From Macrostomum hystrix (lineage: Eukaryota > Animalia > Platyhelminthes): DNA of 64,000 nucleotides. The notes beneath the pieces are model-generated. The model searched no databases. It saw nothing but the letters and a program-made list of their open reading frames with translations, and was not told where the DNA came from. Positions 7,812-39,773 of the stretch are shown here, piece after piece. The stretch covers positions 6,386,001 to 6,450,000 of the forward strand of contig CATNEN010000025.1 of assembly GCA_950097015.1 (NCBI GenBank), read 5' to 3'. A program made the translations under genes and the position numbers. Each line of letters begins with the position of its first letter. Position 1 is the stretch's first letter.

Positions 7812-7823
7812 GTGAGAACGCAT

Positions 7824-8031
7824 GGGGGACTGTCGGCTTAGCGATTAGGGCGTCGGACTAACGAGTTGAGGGTCGGGGGTTCGATTCCCGCGACTTCATA
7901 GGAACAATTTGTGTCCTTTGGCAAGACAGTTAATTCTGCATTGCTTCAGTTCATACAGCTGTTAAATGGGTAACCGTCATTACTTGGGGTAATTGAGGGT
8001 GGGTGTGGCGTCCCTCCAGTCCATGGACTGA
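7824..8031 (+). mobile_element. tRNA-derived SINE family 1, copy 1 (CORE-like central domain), in KIAA0513-like intron 3
   Basis: tRNA-like head with B box GGTTCGATTCC (7878-7888); TGTGTCCTTTGGCAAGACAGTTAA...CAGCTGTTAAATGGG resembles CORE; shares GAGGGTGGGTGTGGCGTCCC..CAGTCCATGGACTGA with the other two copies. Confidence 0.75.
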
Positions 8032-13200: not shown

Positions 13201-15640
13201 CTCCTTCAGTGGGATTATCCTCTTTCTTTCTGTGGGATTACCCTCTTTTCTTTCTGTGGGATTACCCTCCTTTCCTTCTGTGGGATTATCCTCTTTCTTT
13301 CTGTGGGATTTCCCTCCTTTCCTTCTGTGGGATTACCCTCTGCTCCTTCTGTGGGATTACCCTCCTTTCTTTCTGTGGGATTGCCCTATTTTCTTTCCGT
13401 GGGATTACCCTCTTTTCTTTCTGTGGGATTACCCTCCGCTCCTTCAGTGGGATTACCCTCCTTTCCTTCTGTGGGATTACCCTCCTTTCTTTCTGTGGGA
13501 TTGCCCTATTTTCTTTCCGTGGATTACCCTTTTTTCTTTCTGTGGGATTACCCTCCGCTCCTTCTGTGGGATTACCCTCCTTTCCTTCAGTGGGATTTCC
13601 CTCCTTTCCTTCTGTGGGATTACCCTCCGCTCCTTCTGTGGGATTACCCTCCTTTCCTTCTGTGGGATTATCCTCTTTCTTTCTGTGGGATTTCCCTCCT
13701 TTCCTTCTGTGGGATTACCCTCTGCTCCTTCTGTGGGATTACCCTCCTTTCTTTCTGTGGGATTGCCCTATTTTCTTTCCGTGGGATTACCCTTTTTTCT
13801 TTCTGTGGGATTACCCTCCGCTCCTTCAGTGGGATTACCCTCCTTTCCTTCTGTGGGATTACCCTCCTTTCTTTCTGTGGGATTGCCCTATTTTCTTTCT
13901 GTGGGATTACCCTTTTTTCTTTCTGTGGGATTACCCTCCGCTCCTTCTGTGGGATTACCCTCCTTTCCTTCAGTGGGATTACCCTCCTTTCCTTCTGTGG
14001 GATTTCCCTCCTTTCCTTCTGTGGGATTACCCTCTTTTCTTTCTGTGGGATTACCCTCCTTTCCTTCAGTGGGATTACCCTCCTTTCCTTCAGTGGGATT
14101 ACCCTCCTGTCCTTCTGTGGAATTACCTTCTTTTCTTTCTGTGGGATTACCCTTTTTTCTTTCTGTGGGATTACCCTCCGCTCCTTCTGTGGGATTACCC
14201 TCCTTTCCTTCTGTGGGATTACCCTCCTTTCCTTCAGTGGGATTACCCTCCTGTCCTTCTGTGGGATTACCCTCTTTTCTTTCTGTGGAATTACCCTCCG
14301 CTCCTTCTGTGGGATTACCCTCCTTTCCTTCTGTGGGATTACCCTCCTTTCTTTCTGTGGGATTGCCCTATTTTCTTTCCGTGGGATTACCCTTTTTTCT
14401 TTCTGTGGGATTACCCTCCGCTCCTTCTGTGGGATTACCCTCTTTTCTTTCTGTGGGATTACCCTCCTTTCCTTCAGTGGGATTACCCTCCTTTCCTTCT
14501 GTGGGATTACCCTCTTTTCTTTCTGTGGGATTACCCTCCTTTCCTTCAGTGGGATTACCCTCCTTTCCTTCAGTGGGATTACCCTCCTGTCCTTCTGTGG
14601 AATTACCTTCTTTTCTTTCTGTGGGATTACCCTTTTTTCTTTCTGTGGGATTACCCTCCGCTCCTTCTGTGGGATTACCCTCCTTTCCTTCTGTGGGATT
14701 ACCCTCCTTTCCTTCTGTGGGATTGCCCTATTTTCTTTCCGTGGGATTACCCTTTTTTCTTTCTGTGGGATTACCCTCCGCTCCTTCTGTGGGATTACCC
14801 TCTTTTCTTTCTGTGGGATTACCCTCCTTTCCTTCAGTGGGATTACCCTCCTTTCCTTCAGTGGGATTACCCTCCTTTCCTTCAGTGGGATTACCCTCCT
14901 GTCCTTCTGTGGAATTACCTTCTTTTCTTTCTGTGGGATTACCCTCCGCTCCTTCTGTGGGATTACCCTCCTTTCCTTCAGTGGGATTACCCTCCTTTCC
15001 TTCTGTGGGATTTCCCTCCTTTCCTTCTGTGGGATTACCCTCTTTTCTTTCTGTGGGATTACCCTCCTTTCCTTCAGTGGGATTACCCTCCTTTCCTTCA
15101 GTGGGATTACCCTCCGGTCCTTCTGTGGAATTACCTTCTTTTCTTTCTGTGGGATTACCCTTTTTTCTTTCAGTGGGATTACCCTCCTTTCCTTCTGTGG
15201 GATTACCCTCCTTTCCTTCAGTGGGATTACCCTCCTGTCCTTCTGTGGAATTACTTTCTTTTCTTTCTGTGGGATTACCCTCTTTTCTTTCTGTGGGATT
15301 ACCCTCCGCTCCTTCTGTGGGATTACCCTCCTTTCCTTCTGTGGGATTACCCTCCTTTCCTTCAGTGGGATTACCCTCCTGTCCTTCTGTGGGATTACCC
15401 TCTTTTCTTTCTGTGGGATTACCCTCCTTTCCTTCAGTGGGATTACCCTCCTGTCCTTCTGTGGGATTACCCTCTTTTCTTTCTGTGGGATTACCCTCCG
15501 CTCCTTCTGTGGGATTACCCTCCTTTCCTTCTGTGGGATTACCCTCCTTTCCTTCAGTGGGATTTACCTCCTGTCCTTCTGTGGGATTACCCTCCGCTCC
15601 TTCTGAGGGATTAACCTCCTTACCTTCGGTGGGATATTTT
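13201..15640. repeat. Minisatellite, 24-nt unit CTGTGGGATTACCCTCCTTTCCTT
   Basis: About 100 copies; a unit length divisible by 3 explains the three 800-aa ORFs. Confidence 0.95.
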
Positions 15641-20104: not shown

Positions 20105-20291
20105 GAGAGTAGAAAGAAGAAGAGAGGGGCAGAGGAAAGGAGGAAGAGAGGAGAGAGAGAGGGGCAGTGGGAGAGAGGAAAAGAGGGAGAGAGGAAGAGA
20201 GGGGGAGAGAGAGGGGCAGAGGGAGAGAGGAATAGGGGGAGAGAGGAAGAGAGAGGGAGAGAGGGAGAGAGAGAGGGAGAGAGAGGAGAGA
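20105..20291. repeat. GA-rich polypurine tract left of the ribozyme island
   Basis: GAGAGAGG-type units. Confidence 0.9.
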
Positions 20292-20349
20292 GGACACTGC
20301 CCATTGAATTTCAAAATTCTAATGTTGGAATCAATTCCGATATGTATCG

Positions 20350-20459
20350 AAAAAATTGACATCAGGATTCGAACCAAGGCAACTCCAGACGCGTTTCGCT
20401 CTTATTGGAGCTCATCAGTAGAGTCTAGCCTAGCGCTCTAGCCATTAGGCTATAGGCGC
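20350..20459 (-). mobile_element. tRNA-like Pol III unit (SINE-like) carrying the hammerhead between its A and B boxes
   Basis: tRNA-like 5' end GCGCCTA TA GCCT AATGGCTA GAGC G; A box TAGCCTAATGG (20452-20442); B box GGTTCGAATCC (20375-20365); TTTTTT terminator (20355-20350). Confidence 0.75.
20381..20425 (-). ncRNA. Minimal type I hammerhead ribozyme; predicted cleavage after GUC, between 20388 and 20387
   Basis: Minus strand GACTCTA-CTGATGA-GCTC(CAATAA)GAGC-GAAA-CGCG-TC-TGGAGTT. It has the full core (CUGAUGA, G10.1:C11.1, GAAA, UH), stem I of 6-7 bp with wobbles, a 4-bp stem II, and stem III reduced to one A-U pair with a palindromic CGCG loop. Confidence 0.88.
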
Positions 20460-20581
20460 TTGTTCAAATCCAGCTTTCAATCTCAACATATCGTAATCAA
20501 TTCGACAGCGCCCCGCAACTCAATCCATACTCACTCAACTCCGTGGCACTGACTCGGTCGTACGAGACGCCGGTGCTGGCC

Positions 20582-21677
20582 TGAGAGAGAGGGAGAGAGG
20601 GAGAGAGAGAGGGAGAGAGGAAGAGAGGGGCAGAGGGAGAGAGGAATAGGGGGAGAGAGGAAGAGAGGGAGAGAGGGAGAGAGGTGGAGAGGGAGAGAGG
20701 GAGAGAGGGAGAGAGGGAGAGAGGAAGGGAGGAAGAGAGGAAGAGAGGAAGAGATGGAGAGAGGAATAGGGGGGGAGAGGTAGAGAGGGAGAGAGGGAGA
20801 GAGGGAGAGAGGAAGGGAGGAAGAGAGGAAGAGAGGAAGAGATGGAGAGAGGAATAGGGGGGGAGAGGTAGAGAGGGAGAGAGGGAGAGAGGTAGAGAGG
20901 AGCAGAGGGAGAGAGGGAGAGAGGGAGAGAGGAAGAGAGGTAGAGAGGAGCAGAGGGAGAGAGGGAGAGAGGGAGAGAGGGAGAGAGGTAGAGAGGAGCA
21001 GAGGGAGAGAGGGAGAGAGGGAGAGAGGAAGGGAGGAAGAGAGGAAGAGAGGAAGAGATGGAGAGAGGAATAGGGGGGGAGAGGTAGAGAGGGAGAGAGG
21101 GAGAGAGGTAGAGAGGAGCAGAGGGAGAGAGGGAGAGAGGGAGAGAGGAAGAGAGGGAGACAGGAAGTGAGGGAGAGAGGGAGAGAGGGAGAGAGGGAGA
21201 CAGGAAGTGAGGGAGAGAGGGAGAGAGGGAGAGAGGTAGAGAGGAGCAGAGGGAGAGAGGGAGAGAGGGAGAGAGGAAGAGAGGGAGACAGGAAGTGAGG
21301 GAGAGAGGGAGAGAGGGAGAGAGGTAGAGAGGAGCAGAGGGAGAGAGGGAGAGAGGGAGAGAGGAAGAGAGGGAGACAGGAAGTGAGGGAGAGAGGGAGA
21401 GAGGGAGAGAGGTAGAGAGGTAGAGAGGGAGAGAGGAAGAGAGAGGGAGAGAGGGAGAGAGGAAGAGAGGGAGACAGGAAGTGAGGGAGAGAGGGAGAGA
21501 GGAAGAGAGAGGAAGAGAGAGGGAGAGAGGGAGAGAGGGAGAGAGGGAGAGAGGTAGAGAGGTAGAGAGGGAGAGAGGAAGAGAGAGGGAGAGAGGGAGA
21601 GAGGAAGAGAGGGAGACAGGAAGTGAGGGAGAGAGGGAGAGAGGAAGAGAGAGGAAGAGAGAGGGAGAGAGGGAGAG
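20582..21677. repeat. 1.1-kb GA-rich polypurine tract right of the ribozyme island
   Basis: GAGAGAGG-type units; almost no pyrimidines on the + strand. Confidence 0.95.
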
Positions 21678-22723: not shown

Positions 22724-23701
22724 TTACATGCTGCCAATGGCAGTCACATTGTCCGGGCTAGACTGTCCATTGTGCATATAATGCGACATGCACATCATGT
22801 GCTGCACCTGCTGCTGTAGGTCCGTCAGGCCGCCACCGCTGGCCGCAGCTATGGACGGCGAGTGAGCGCCGCCGCCTCCGATCGGGCTGTCCGGATCCTG
22901 CTTGAGCATATAGCTAGCTGCGGCTGAGTGCATGTAGCCCTGACTCGAAGGCGAGCCGTAGGCTGCGGCTGCGGCTGCGGCTGCTGAAGGCAGGTGGGAA
23001 ATATAGGCTCCGTAGTGCTGCATGCCCATCATACTGGCAGCCGCCTGCTGCTGCTGCTGCTGATGATGCTGCTGCTGCTGATGATGATGCTGCAGATGTT
23101 GCGGCTGGTGATAAGAAGCGGCAGCTGCGGCCGCCGCCGCCGCCGAGGAAGGATCCATGCCAAGGTGATGATGATGGTGGTACTGATGCTGCTGCTGTTG
23201 TTGATGCTGCTGCTGGCTCTGATGTTCCGGCTGGAGTTGCGGCTGATGCTGCGGATGCTGTGTCATGTACGGCTGGGCACTGTACAGATCTCGGGGCAGC
23301 TGCGGTCCTCCAGTAGGCAAGCCGGCTGGGCCGGCTGAGTAGCGATCCTGCCGCTTCAGCAGGGTCTTGGTCTTGCGCCTGGGCCGGTACTTGTAGTCCG
23401 GATGGTCCTTCATGTGGATGGCCCTCAGCCGCTTGGCCTCGTCTATGAACGGCCGCTTCTCGGTCTCGCTGAGACTCTTCCACTCGGCGCCCAGCCGCTT
23501 GCTGATCTCGGAGTTGTGCATCTTCGGGTTCTCCTGGGCCATCTTGCGGCGCTGGCCCCGGCTCCACACCATGAAGGCGTTCATCGGCCGCTTCACCCGG
23601 TCGTCCTTTCGGCCGCCGCTAAGCGCCACATCAACGCCGGAGCTCTTTGCTGATGACGTCATCGGAGGCGAGATGATGCCCAGGTGTCCAAGCGGTGTGC
23701 A
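22724..23701 (-). CDS. SoxB1: SoxB1 (Sox1/2/3/SoxNeuro-like) HMG-box transcription factor, exon 2
   Basis: HMG box [42 protein letters not shown]...[17 protein letters not shown] includes the group-B motif. A TTTCAG acceptor at 23702-23707 adds 13 in-frame codons before Met 23662. Confidence 0.95.
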
Positions 23702-37680: not shown

Positions 37681-38679
37681 TCTTTTTTTCGTATAAAATT
37701 CTTGATACTAAACAATAAAGTCCAATCCGCCCAGACTTTTACAATACTAAAGTTAAATAATCATATCATATTCTGCTTTTATTTTCCTATGATGCCTCAC
37801 TATATTCCCTATAAAAATAATATTAAAAAACAGAATTTTTTGAACTTCGAAATATGAACATGCAAGACTGAACTGATCATATTAAGTCCCATTCGATATG
37901 TCAGTTTGACGCGTCAAAGGGGCCAAAAATAATCGGCACATTGGGTTGCTATGGGCAGGTCTTCGACTCGCTTGAGCAGCCTCACCTGCAATATATCTGT
38001 CATATAGATTTGGGTGTCGAATTACATCGCTAAGCGGTCTCAAGTCCCAATGTCCGCCCCCTGTCTACTCAGGTATGACGGAATAGGGCACTGCAGAACA
38101 GTATAAAGCCCCTAATTATTTTAAAACTTTGTTTAATTAACGGATTAATCACAACTAACTTGCCGATAAAGTGGAAACGAGTTTTTTTTTAAGTTTTTTT
38201 GTAACATTATATAAGTGGTTTATTAATGGCTTACAGTCACTGAGATGTATTCCGAAATTTGTGATTCATAGTGTCAATAAAAATAGTTTTTTTGCCATTC
38301 TCAAAAAAACTATGACAGGATATTTCTACTTGCAGTAGCAGGATCGCGTTCAGAAACGATTTATTTTTTTTTACTGAAAAAAACACAGGATTTTATGCTA
38401 AAATTTGCGAGCGGGCATGCAATACAGTGCAGTGTCGGCCATCAAAGAATATTAAATAATATTGAATGATCCTAACAATATGGGAATTTTGTGAATTGAA
38501 TTTCAGAAAGTAAGGCAGTGCAGCAGCTGGATTCAAACATATTGAAATTTGAGATCTCTTAAAGTGCAAGTATTATGTAGATGTAGCGCGTGCGTCATGA
38601 ATTCATGCGAAGGTGAAAAACACGCGCTTCCTGTCTAACCGCTGTTATAACCCGTAGCACAGCAATTTCAAACGGTAAC

Positions 38680-39560
38680 ACCTCTGTTCTAACAGTTAAC
38701 ACTGCTGTTCTAACAGTTACCACTGCTGTTCTAACAGTTACCACTGCTGTTCTAACAGTTACCACTGCTGTTCTAACAGTTAACACTGCTGTTCTAACAG
38801 TTACCACTGCTGTTCTAACAGTTAACACTGCTGTTCTAACAGTTACCACTGCTGTTCTAACAGTTACCACTGCTGTTCTAACAGTTAACACTGCTGTTCT
38901 AACAGTTAACACTGCTGTTCTAACAGTTAACACTGCTGTTCTAACAGTTAACACTGCTGTTCTAACAGTTAACACTGCTGTTCTAACAGTTAACACTGCT
39001 GTTTTAACAGCTATAACTGCTGTTTTAACAGCTATAACTGCTGTTCTAACAGTTAACACTGCTGTTCTAACAGTTAACACTGCTGTTCTAACAGTTAACA
39101 CTGCTGATCTAACAGTTAACACTGCTGTTCTAACAGTTAACACTGCTGTTCTAACAGTTAACACTGCTGTTCTAACAGTTAACACTGCTGTTTTAACAGT
39201 TAACACTGCTGTTCTAACAGTTAACACTGCTGTTCTAACAGTTAACACTGCTGTTCTAACAGTTAACACTGCTGTTCTAACAGTTAACACTGCTGTTCTA
39301 ACAGTTAACACTGCTGTTCTAACAGTTAACACTGCTGTTCTAACAGTTAACACTGCTGTTCTAACAGTTAACACTGCTGTTCTAACAGTTAACACTGCTG
39401 TTTTAACAGCTATAACTGCTGTTTTAACAGCTATAACTGCTGTTCTAACAGTTAACACTGCTGTTCTAACAGTTAACACTGCTGTTCTAACAGTTAACAC
39501 TGCTGTTCTAACAGTTAACACTGCTGTTCTAACAGTTAACACTGCTGTTCTAACAGTTAA
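38680..39560. repeat. Minisatellite, 21-nt palindromic unit CTGTTCTAACAGTTAACACTG
   Basis: About 42 copies. Confidence 0.95.
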
Positions 39561-39773
39561 GCCTAGTGGTTAGAGCGTCGGTCTCACGACTTGGAAGATC
39601 AAGGGTTCGATTCCCGGCTCCACTGGAGCAATAAGTGTCCGCATCAGTTGGGGTAATTGAGGGTGGGTGTGGCGTCCCCCCAGTCCATGGACTGAACAGC
39701 CGTACGCAGCCTTCAGATGCGCCGCGCAATAGCCGCGGCTGTGCTGTCGGCTGCACATCGGACCCAATTGGGG
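39561..39773 (+). mobile_element. SINE family 1, copy 3 (internal deletion of most of the CORE-like part)
   Basis: A box remnant GCCTAGTGGTTAGAGCG; B box GGTTCGATTCC; tail shared with copy 2. Confidence 0.75.

Follow-up and report, generated by a model that had tools for sequence, protein, structure and literature searches.

A Hammerhead Ribozyme Nested between tRNA-Type A and B Boxes in a Young 336-nt Repeat Family of Macrostomum hystrix

Architecture of the Motif

The window, by which we mean the whole 64-kb stretch of DNA analyzed here, carries on its minus strand, from position 20459 to position 20350 and in this order, a tRNA-like head with an A box, a complete type I hammerhead ribozyme, a perfect B box and a run of six thymines (T6), all of which can be read directly from the letters. 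The order of parts given for this strand by a first-pass annotation of the same DNA agrees exactly with the letters of 20459-20350. The features are as follows, where u denotes positions in the 336-nt repeat unit described below:

20426-20459, minus strand: tRNA-like head GCGCCTATAGCCTAATGGCTAGAGCGCTAGGCTA (u124-157), by direct reading
20442-20452, minus strand: A box TAGCCTAATGG (u131-141), within the tRNA-like head, by consensus match
20375-20433, minus strand: type I hammerhead (u150-208), from Rfam HH9, fold and cofold
Between 20388 and 20387, minus strand: predicted self-cleavage site GUC↓U (u195/u196), from the hammerhead alignment
20365-20375, minus strand: B box GGTTCGAATCC (u208-218), by consensus match
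20350-20355, minus strand: T6 run resembling a Pol III terminator (u228-233), lying within the retrotransposed unit and present in nearly all copies

The head can be spelled as GCGCCTA TA GCCT AATGGCTA GAGC G and is followed by CTAGGC and then by a UA bulge; the GCCTTG found after the hammerhead overlaps the B box. The proposal that CTAGGC and GCCTTG pair with one mismatch stands as a description of the letters, but only its GGC/GCC part is robust, and a T>A variant at unit position 206 is accompanied by no compensating change on the partner strand. The B box consensus is rare in the 64-kb window (3 matches vs 0.30 expected), whereas the A box consensus alone is not (9 matches vs 8.1 expected). 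The two boxes lie 66 nt apart, with T6 beginning 10 nt past the B box, and the occurrence of an A box and a B box in the right order and spacing on one strand is, by sequence expectation, far beyond chance.

The motif thus resembles tRNA genes and the heads of tRNA-derived SINEs in having an A box, a B box and a T-run at tRNA-gene spacing, but differs from tRNA genes in lacking an acceptor stem, an anticodon arm and a variable arm, and in carrying 55 nt of ribozyme in the anticodon region. ARAGORN predicted no tRNA gene (cloverleaf) anywhere in the window and, with introns allowed and thresholds relaxed, returned only spurious folds that ignored the proposed tRNA-like head, while the Rfam tRNA model had no match on the strand of the element. 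This agrees with the earlier judgment that the 3′ half is degenerate. On the antisense strand, we note a T-arm-like stretch, GTTCAAATCC, at 20460-20476 (the plus-strand reading of u107-123) with a weak Rfam tRNA match of 15 bits, which arises because the leader of the unit pairs with the near-palindromic B box in the rod-like fold discussed below.

The surroundings of the motif contain several further features:

7820-7900, plus strand: tRNA-derived SINE-like head with A and B boxes, B box GGTTCGATTCC
39555-39625, plus strand: second tRNA-derived SINE-like head with A and B boxes, B box GGTTCGATTCC, abutting a 21-nt minisatellite at 38676-39560
22724-23662, minus strand: intronless ORF of 312 amino acids with one HMG box (Pfam E 7e-28), on the same strand as the element

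The element lies about 2.1 kb downstream of the HMG-box ORF. The two SINE-like heads are about 75% alike, and neither is called a tRNA by ARAGORN. Both were considered as the source of the tRNA-like head and rejected, as the likeness extends only to a generic D-arm (score z ~2.8). More generally, unrelated minisatellites are densely packed in the window, which has over 20 arrays with units of 8-34 nt; one of these, at 13202-15635 (a 24-mer repeated 101 times), yields false ORFs of about 800 amino acids.

The 336-nt Repeat Unit

Alignment of 28 loci gave a consensus unit of 336 nt, composed of a 291-nt core and a constant CT-rich tail of about 45 nt (TCTCTCCTCTCTCCCGCTCTCTCTCTCCCTCTCTCCCTCTCTCTC). 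In order, the unit comprises a 123-nt leader, a cassette, a 58-nt trailer and the 45-nt CT-rich tail, where the cassette consists of a dimer-type type I hammerhead that has a tRNA-derived A box/D-arm on its 5′ side and, on its 3′ side, a B box/T-loop with T6 after it. The 110-nt stretch that had been annotated as an element of its own corresponds to u124-u233 and is instead the center, the middle third, of this larger unit. The parts of the copy in the window are as follows:

20248-20628, minus strand: whole insertion, 383 nt, made up of the 291-nt core with some 47 nt of terminal redundancy ahead of it and the CT tail behind it
20583-20628, minus strand: 5′ terminal redundancy, equal to the CT-rich tail of a preceding unit, GCTCTCTCTCTCCCTCTCTCCCTCTCTCTC
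20292-20582, minus strand: unit core u1-u291, AGGCCAGCACC ... GGGCAGTGTCC, from the 28-locus consensus
20487-20505, minus strand: 5′ arm (about 18 nt) of an inverted repeat (u78-96), pairing with u239-256 in the rod-like fold
20327-20344, minus strand: 3′ arm of the inverted repeat (u239-256)
20248-20291, minus strand: CT-rich 3′ tail (u292-335), where copies end
20585-21677, no strand assigned: host (GAGAGAGG)n array of 1.1 kb (TRF), a CT-rich target on the strand of the element
20140-20283, no strand assigned: shorter GA-rich array (TRF) on the other side of the copy

The core of the window copy is 98% identical to the consensus, without indels, and carries one ribozyme. When aligned to a trimer of the consensus unit, the insertion starts at u290 of a preceding unit and ends at u335, with 97% identity. 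The last ~30 nt of the tail also stand before the core in full-length copies, and GCTCTCTCTCTCCCTCTCTCCCTCTCTCTC precedes u1 in most of them, whatever the flanking satellite. The unit is a short non-coding hammerhead repeat within the 170-400 nt range, found as head-to-tail copies and without LTR, PBS or PPT, as is characteristic of metazoan non-LTR retrozymes.

A Hammerhead of the Dimer Type

The hammerhead is built from a stem I of 7 bp (GACUCUA/UGGAGUU) that continues through the UA bulge into GGC/GCC, the core CUGAUGA, a 4-bp stem II (GCUC/GAGC) with the loop CAAUAA, and then GAAAC-GC-GUC. All core nucleotides are intact, and the arrangement is that of a type I hammerhead (CUGANGA ... GAAA ... 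UH↓, three helices, helix I open). The Rfam HH9 model matches 20365-20436 on the minus strand from end to end with 38.7 bits (E 1.4e-8 in a 311-nt search); together with the full core, this upholds the first-pass reading of a complete hammerhead. The same score explains why a scan of the window at Rfam gathering thresholds gave no matches, since the curated gathering score of HH9 is 52 bits.

Helix III consists of only 2 bp, A-U and C-G, around a 2-nt loop, and does not close within one molecule. It is part of the palindrome ACGCGU, and in cofolding a dimer joined through ACGCGU was better than two monomers. Because helix III is a palindrome with a 2-nt loop, a second ribozyme is required in these predictions, and cleavage by this hammerhead is predicted to need two ribozymes. 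Dimer-type hammerheads of this kind have been described in newt, in axolotl and in Penelope-like elements (PMC7229834). The suggestion that a lone 110-nt RNA simply cuts itself into pieces of 72 and 38 nt is not supported, as helix III is unable to close on itself.

We note in addition that the 26-nt ribozyme core CTGATGAGCTCCAATAAGAGCGAAAC occurs letter for letter in unrelated repeats of other organisms, in five metagenome hammerheads (L147, L123, L164, L154 and L110) whose helix III is also palindromic, for example ACAACGUUGU.

Folded as a circle, the monomer from cleavage site to cleavage site forms a long rod of -122 kcal/mol (z -5.5 vs mononucleotide shuffles), and is thus highly self-paired in its predicted fold, a property by which retrozymes are recognized. 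In this rod, the side with the B box and T6 is paired with the leader, and the ~18-nt inverted repeat u78-96/u239-256 brackets the cassette. The copies show no compensatory pairs in the stems, which is uninformative because sequences that are 92-100% identical (about 2% divergence) are too alike for a covariation test to be possible.

Copy Number and Integration Footprint

A search of the 220-Mb assembly with 131 nt around the motif gave at least 40 scored copies at 98-100% identity. We also performed exhaustive pattern searches of the genome with up to 2 mismatches, for which all reversed-pattern controls gave 0 matches, and obtained the following whole-genome counts:

u271-291: 126 copies
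u196-218: 121 copies
u186-207: 104 copies
u165-190: 91 copies
u124-147: 62 copies
u1-23: 45 copies

The element is therefore multicopy, as had been anticipated, with at least 40 scored copies and up to 126 by pattern count, and the order of A box, hammerhead and B box is kept in all intact copies. The family is young, with about 2% divergence, and its substitutions are near-uniform, such that the decay looks neutral.

The drop in counts from 126 at the 3′ end to 45 at the 5′ end means that 3′ ends are fixed and 5′ ends are truncated by degrees. This is also what is found when individual insertions are read: among 79 loci, nearly all end in the CT tail, with scattered 5′ ends, and the 5′ junctions show CT microhomology. 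The flanks are CT-rich micro- or minisatellites whose repeat variant changes from one locus to another while being shared by the two flanks of any one copy. About a dozen insertions are 1.1-1.6 units long (539 nt at most), in which a full copy has a truncated one directly upstream, and even "full-length" copies begin inside the preceding unit, either in its tail or somewhere in its final 10-60 nt. No long arrays of many tandem units turned up, and most copies are solitary or span at most 1.6 units. The earlier proposal of a non-autonomous retroelement carrying a hammerhead is supported.

We considered whether these copies could instead have spread purely at the DNA level, by satellite-type or segmental duplication without passing through RNA. 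Minisatellites are very abundant in the genome, and there is one locus, L049 at C38:21523778-21528457, where five identical 5′-truncated copies (u112-336) are spaced at 1589/690/1589/680 bp. This cluster, at 21.52 Mb of C38, is best read as a 2.27-kb higher-order tandem duplication that carries the element along at the DNA level. However, copies of the family occur on more than 25 contigs, with a flanking repeat that differs from copy to copy, and share one-sided (5′) truncation and a constant 3′ end, which makes a DNA-level origin of the family as a whole extremely improbable.

Truncation and a fixed 3′ tail are classic marks of target-primed reverse transcription of LINEs and SINEs, and ordinary tRNA-derived SINE heads are present in this genome. 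A further possibility is thus that the element is an ordinary tRNA-derived SINE, a linear RNA copied by a LINE with a CT-type tail, with the hammerhead carried along as a passenger and circular RNA playing no part. Consistent with this, an A box followed by a B box at workable spacing is found. However, the element does not begin at a Pol III start free of an internal terminator, as 123 nt lie upstream of the head and T6 lies inside, and an RNA made from a Pol III start at about u115 could not yield copies that include u1-114. Moreover, in about 45% of full-length copies u1 is preceded by at least the tail of a further unit, which together with the dozen insertions longer than one unit calls for multimeric or circular templates. 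Taking these observations together, we regard an ordinary linear SINE as rather improbable.

The polarity of truncation identifies the hammerhead-sense strand as the RNA template, and since the copied RNA spans T6 and more than one unit, it was multimeric or circular. The genomic footprint as a whole is accordingly read here, at the level of sequence, as that left when a hammerhead-sense RNA, multimeric or circular, undergoes target-primed reverse transcription. As the copies carry sequence on both sides of T6 and all end in the CT tail, a 110-nt transcript terminated at T6 cannot be the mobile form: the RNA that was retro-copied ran through T6.

The pattern counts also show where 5′ ends concentrate. 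In the 10 nt before the predicted cleavage site, 17 copies are lost (121 to 104), compared to 5 over the next 75 nt 3′ of the site and 13 over the preceding 21 nt, and one partial copy (L008) begins exactly at u196, with a flank that is not CT-rich. This excess of 5′ ends at u187-196, along with L008, may be a footprint of cleavage in vivo, that is, of template 5′ ends made by the ribozyme. The hot spots of 5′ ends at u160-168 and u187-196 have another possible explanation, however, in CT microhomology to the target (CTCT, TCT), which is found at u160-164 and u194-196. Loci that match u196-218 without matching u186-207 are C1:17016881, C1:17017139, C1:21164041, C2:7353328, C7:893383, C8:1594082, C11:5799291, C11:5595758, C25:6463240, C28:342986, C29:3945356, C38:10834619 and C38:26708019.

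Six copies (L035, L061, L067, L038, L069 and L051) show either an internal deletion or a short duplication at the 5′ junction; for instance, u277 is joined to u130 in one case, and u108 to u154 in another, whereby the tRNA-like head is removed. These altered junctions look like template switches during reverse transcription.

Origin and Possible Use of the Pol III Boxes

The A and B boxes probably derive from a tRNA gene or from the head of a tRNA-derived SINE, and they may provide copies with an internal Pol III promoter. A family-agnostic genome pattern that asks for a B box after a hammerhead core matched 76 sites, of which 74 are the 336-nt family and 2 are due to chance. In metagenome contigs, 126 hammerheads share this stem II, and not one of them has A or B boxes nearby or is homologous outside the core, which indicates that having the ribozyme does not of itself entail the boxes. 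Among the copies, substitutions amount to 1.1% in the B box and 2.2% in the A box, and to 1.0% in the hammerhead core (a figure biased by copy sampling), compared to about 2% overall.

These data bear on the possibility that the 110 nt form a functioning Pol III gene, which starts about 10 nt before the A box and ends at T6, and whose main product or function would be the self-cut RNAs of 72 and 38 nt. The perfect B box, the good A box and the placement of T6 at tRNA-gene spacing are what such a gene would have; the boxes are no by-product of the hammerhead, and the slightly lower substitution in the B box and, subject to the sampling bias just mentioned, in the hammerhead core point in the same direction. 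Set against this, the retro-copied RNA spans T6 and both of its flanks, helix III cannot form within one molecule, and the architecture is confined to one young family with no sign of selection. On balance, we consider a working Pol III gene unlikely. With the architecture present only in one young family and substitutions near-uniform, evolution lends no support for use of the boxes or of T6.

Seven public sequencing runs contain the sequence in their Logan contigs; none of these is recorded as RNA, and they provide a few short contigs, without joints or ends. The break of the X1 contig at T6 is uninformative because the length of the T-run there varies among copies. One X4 contig carries the flank junction of one of our loci (L058), and so the X4 run is probably from the same species.

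A more far-reaching reading is that the tRNA-like frame is not a relic but a functional mimicry. The hammerhead would cut at the position of a tRNA intron, so that the cleaved RNA would pass for an intermediate of tRNA splicing and attract the tRNA ligase RtcB, which would circularize it, while the boxes would serve every new copy as an entry site for Pol III/TFIIIC. If true, the cut would separate a 5′ half resembling a D-arm from a 3′ half resembling a T-arm, and would leave the same 2′,3′-cyclic phosphate and 5′-OH ends as the removal of a tRNA intron. We hold this mimicry to be very doubtful.

Comparison with Known Hammerhead Elements

Metazoan non-LTR retrozymes (Cervera & de la Peña 2020, PMC7229834; Li, Clavereau & Pollet 2026 preprint, 10.64898/2026.07.22.740005) have been reported in platyhelminths, and a link to Penelope-like elements has been proposed for them. 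The 336-nt element is like them in its unit size in the 170-400 nt range, its type I hammerhead, a GC content below 50%, head-to-tail partial repeats and a rod-like predicted fold, and shares a dimer-type helix III with the amphibian retrozymes in particular. Unlike metazoan retrozymes, it has a constant CT-rich tail, is inserted in CT-rich micro- and minisatellites, and carries its hammerhead within a tRNA-type pair of A and B boxes, with T6 after them; a Pol III or tRNA-like promoter is not mentioned in either of these two retrozyme texts. [quoted passage not shown]

A likeness in overall composition that had been pointed out, to schistosome Sm-alpha/Sj-alpha elements (Ferbeyre et al. 1998; Laha et al. 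2000; as summarized in PMC2770079 and PMC8490949), is sustained when published descriptions are compared: both combine a unit of similar size (~335 nt in the schistosome elements) with tRNA-related Pol III features and a type I hammerhead whose helix III is very short, and both occur as dispersed and tandem copies. According to these summaries, the Sm-alpha/Sj-alpha hammerhead is active. Copies of Sm-alpha are called as tRNA-Gln-TTG genes or pseudogenes by tRNAscan-SE (PMC2770079), in contrast to the 336-nt element, where no tRNA is detectable. We found no earlier description of a hammerhead nested between A and B boxes, with Sm-alpha and Sj-alpha known by summary description only.

Penelope-like elements show 5′ truncation, partial tandems, hammerheads and a microsatellite bias that hides target-site duplications (PMC8557442). 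The 336-nt element shares with them a high degree of 5′ truncation, the placement of a truncated copy upstream of a full one, the microsatellite bias and a minimal dimer-type hammerhead, but differs in having no ORF, and no inverted 5′ copies were seen.

No autonomous partner, a Penelope-like reverse transcriptase/endonuclease included, was identified in the genome, where a GIY-YIG Pfam search, with a profile that is not specific to Penelope, gave only 4 weak matches. No longer element sharing the 3′ end was found among the genome pattern matches, where the readable matches to the hammerhead core and to the 3′ end are all the short element. ORFs beside the metagenome hammerheads were considered as a Penelope-like partner and rejected, as they encode Helitron, Gypsy-type or ankyrin proteins instead. 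Among these, the metagenome contigs WLWD01... (L122, L187, L210, L222 and L180), from another eukaryote, have a hammerhead with the same stem II near Helitron_like_N, PIF1 helicase and OTU ORFs, and this hammerhead may belong to a ribozyme-bearing repeat associated with Helitrons.

Proposed Mechanism and Implications

Taking all of this into account, the copy in the window is likely to be a solitary and almost complete member of a young family of non-autonomous retroelements of the animal non-LTR retrozyme or Sm-alpha-like kind, in which the ribozyme is nested in a tRNA-derived Pol III promoter module. Under such a scheme, a hammerhead-sense RNA longer than one unit would first be made, for which the polarity of truncation provides indirect evidence. 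Two hammerheads would then pair via ACGCGU and cut at GUC↓U, and the resulting monomers, with 5′-OH and 2′,3′-cyclic phosphate ends, would be closed into rod-like circles by the tRNA ligase RtcB, by analogy to published retrozymes. Finally, a putative reverse transcriptase acting in trans would copy the multimeric or circular RNA, as the genomic footprint suggests, starting where the CT tail anneals to a nicked CT/GA-rich micro- or minisatellite, and often stopping early or running past one unit.

The architecture of A box, hammerhead and B box is limited to this single young family of about 130 copies (~126 by pattern count). Within it, the copies, with their fixed CT tail, 5′ truncation, inserts of more than one unit and microsatellite targets, constitute a clean footprint of how such elements integrate. 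For animal retrozymes, a ribozyme nested in a tRNA-type promoter module is a concrete, testable candidate both for the source of their transcription and for the hand-over of their RNA to tRNA ligase.
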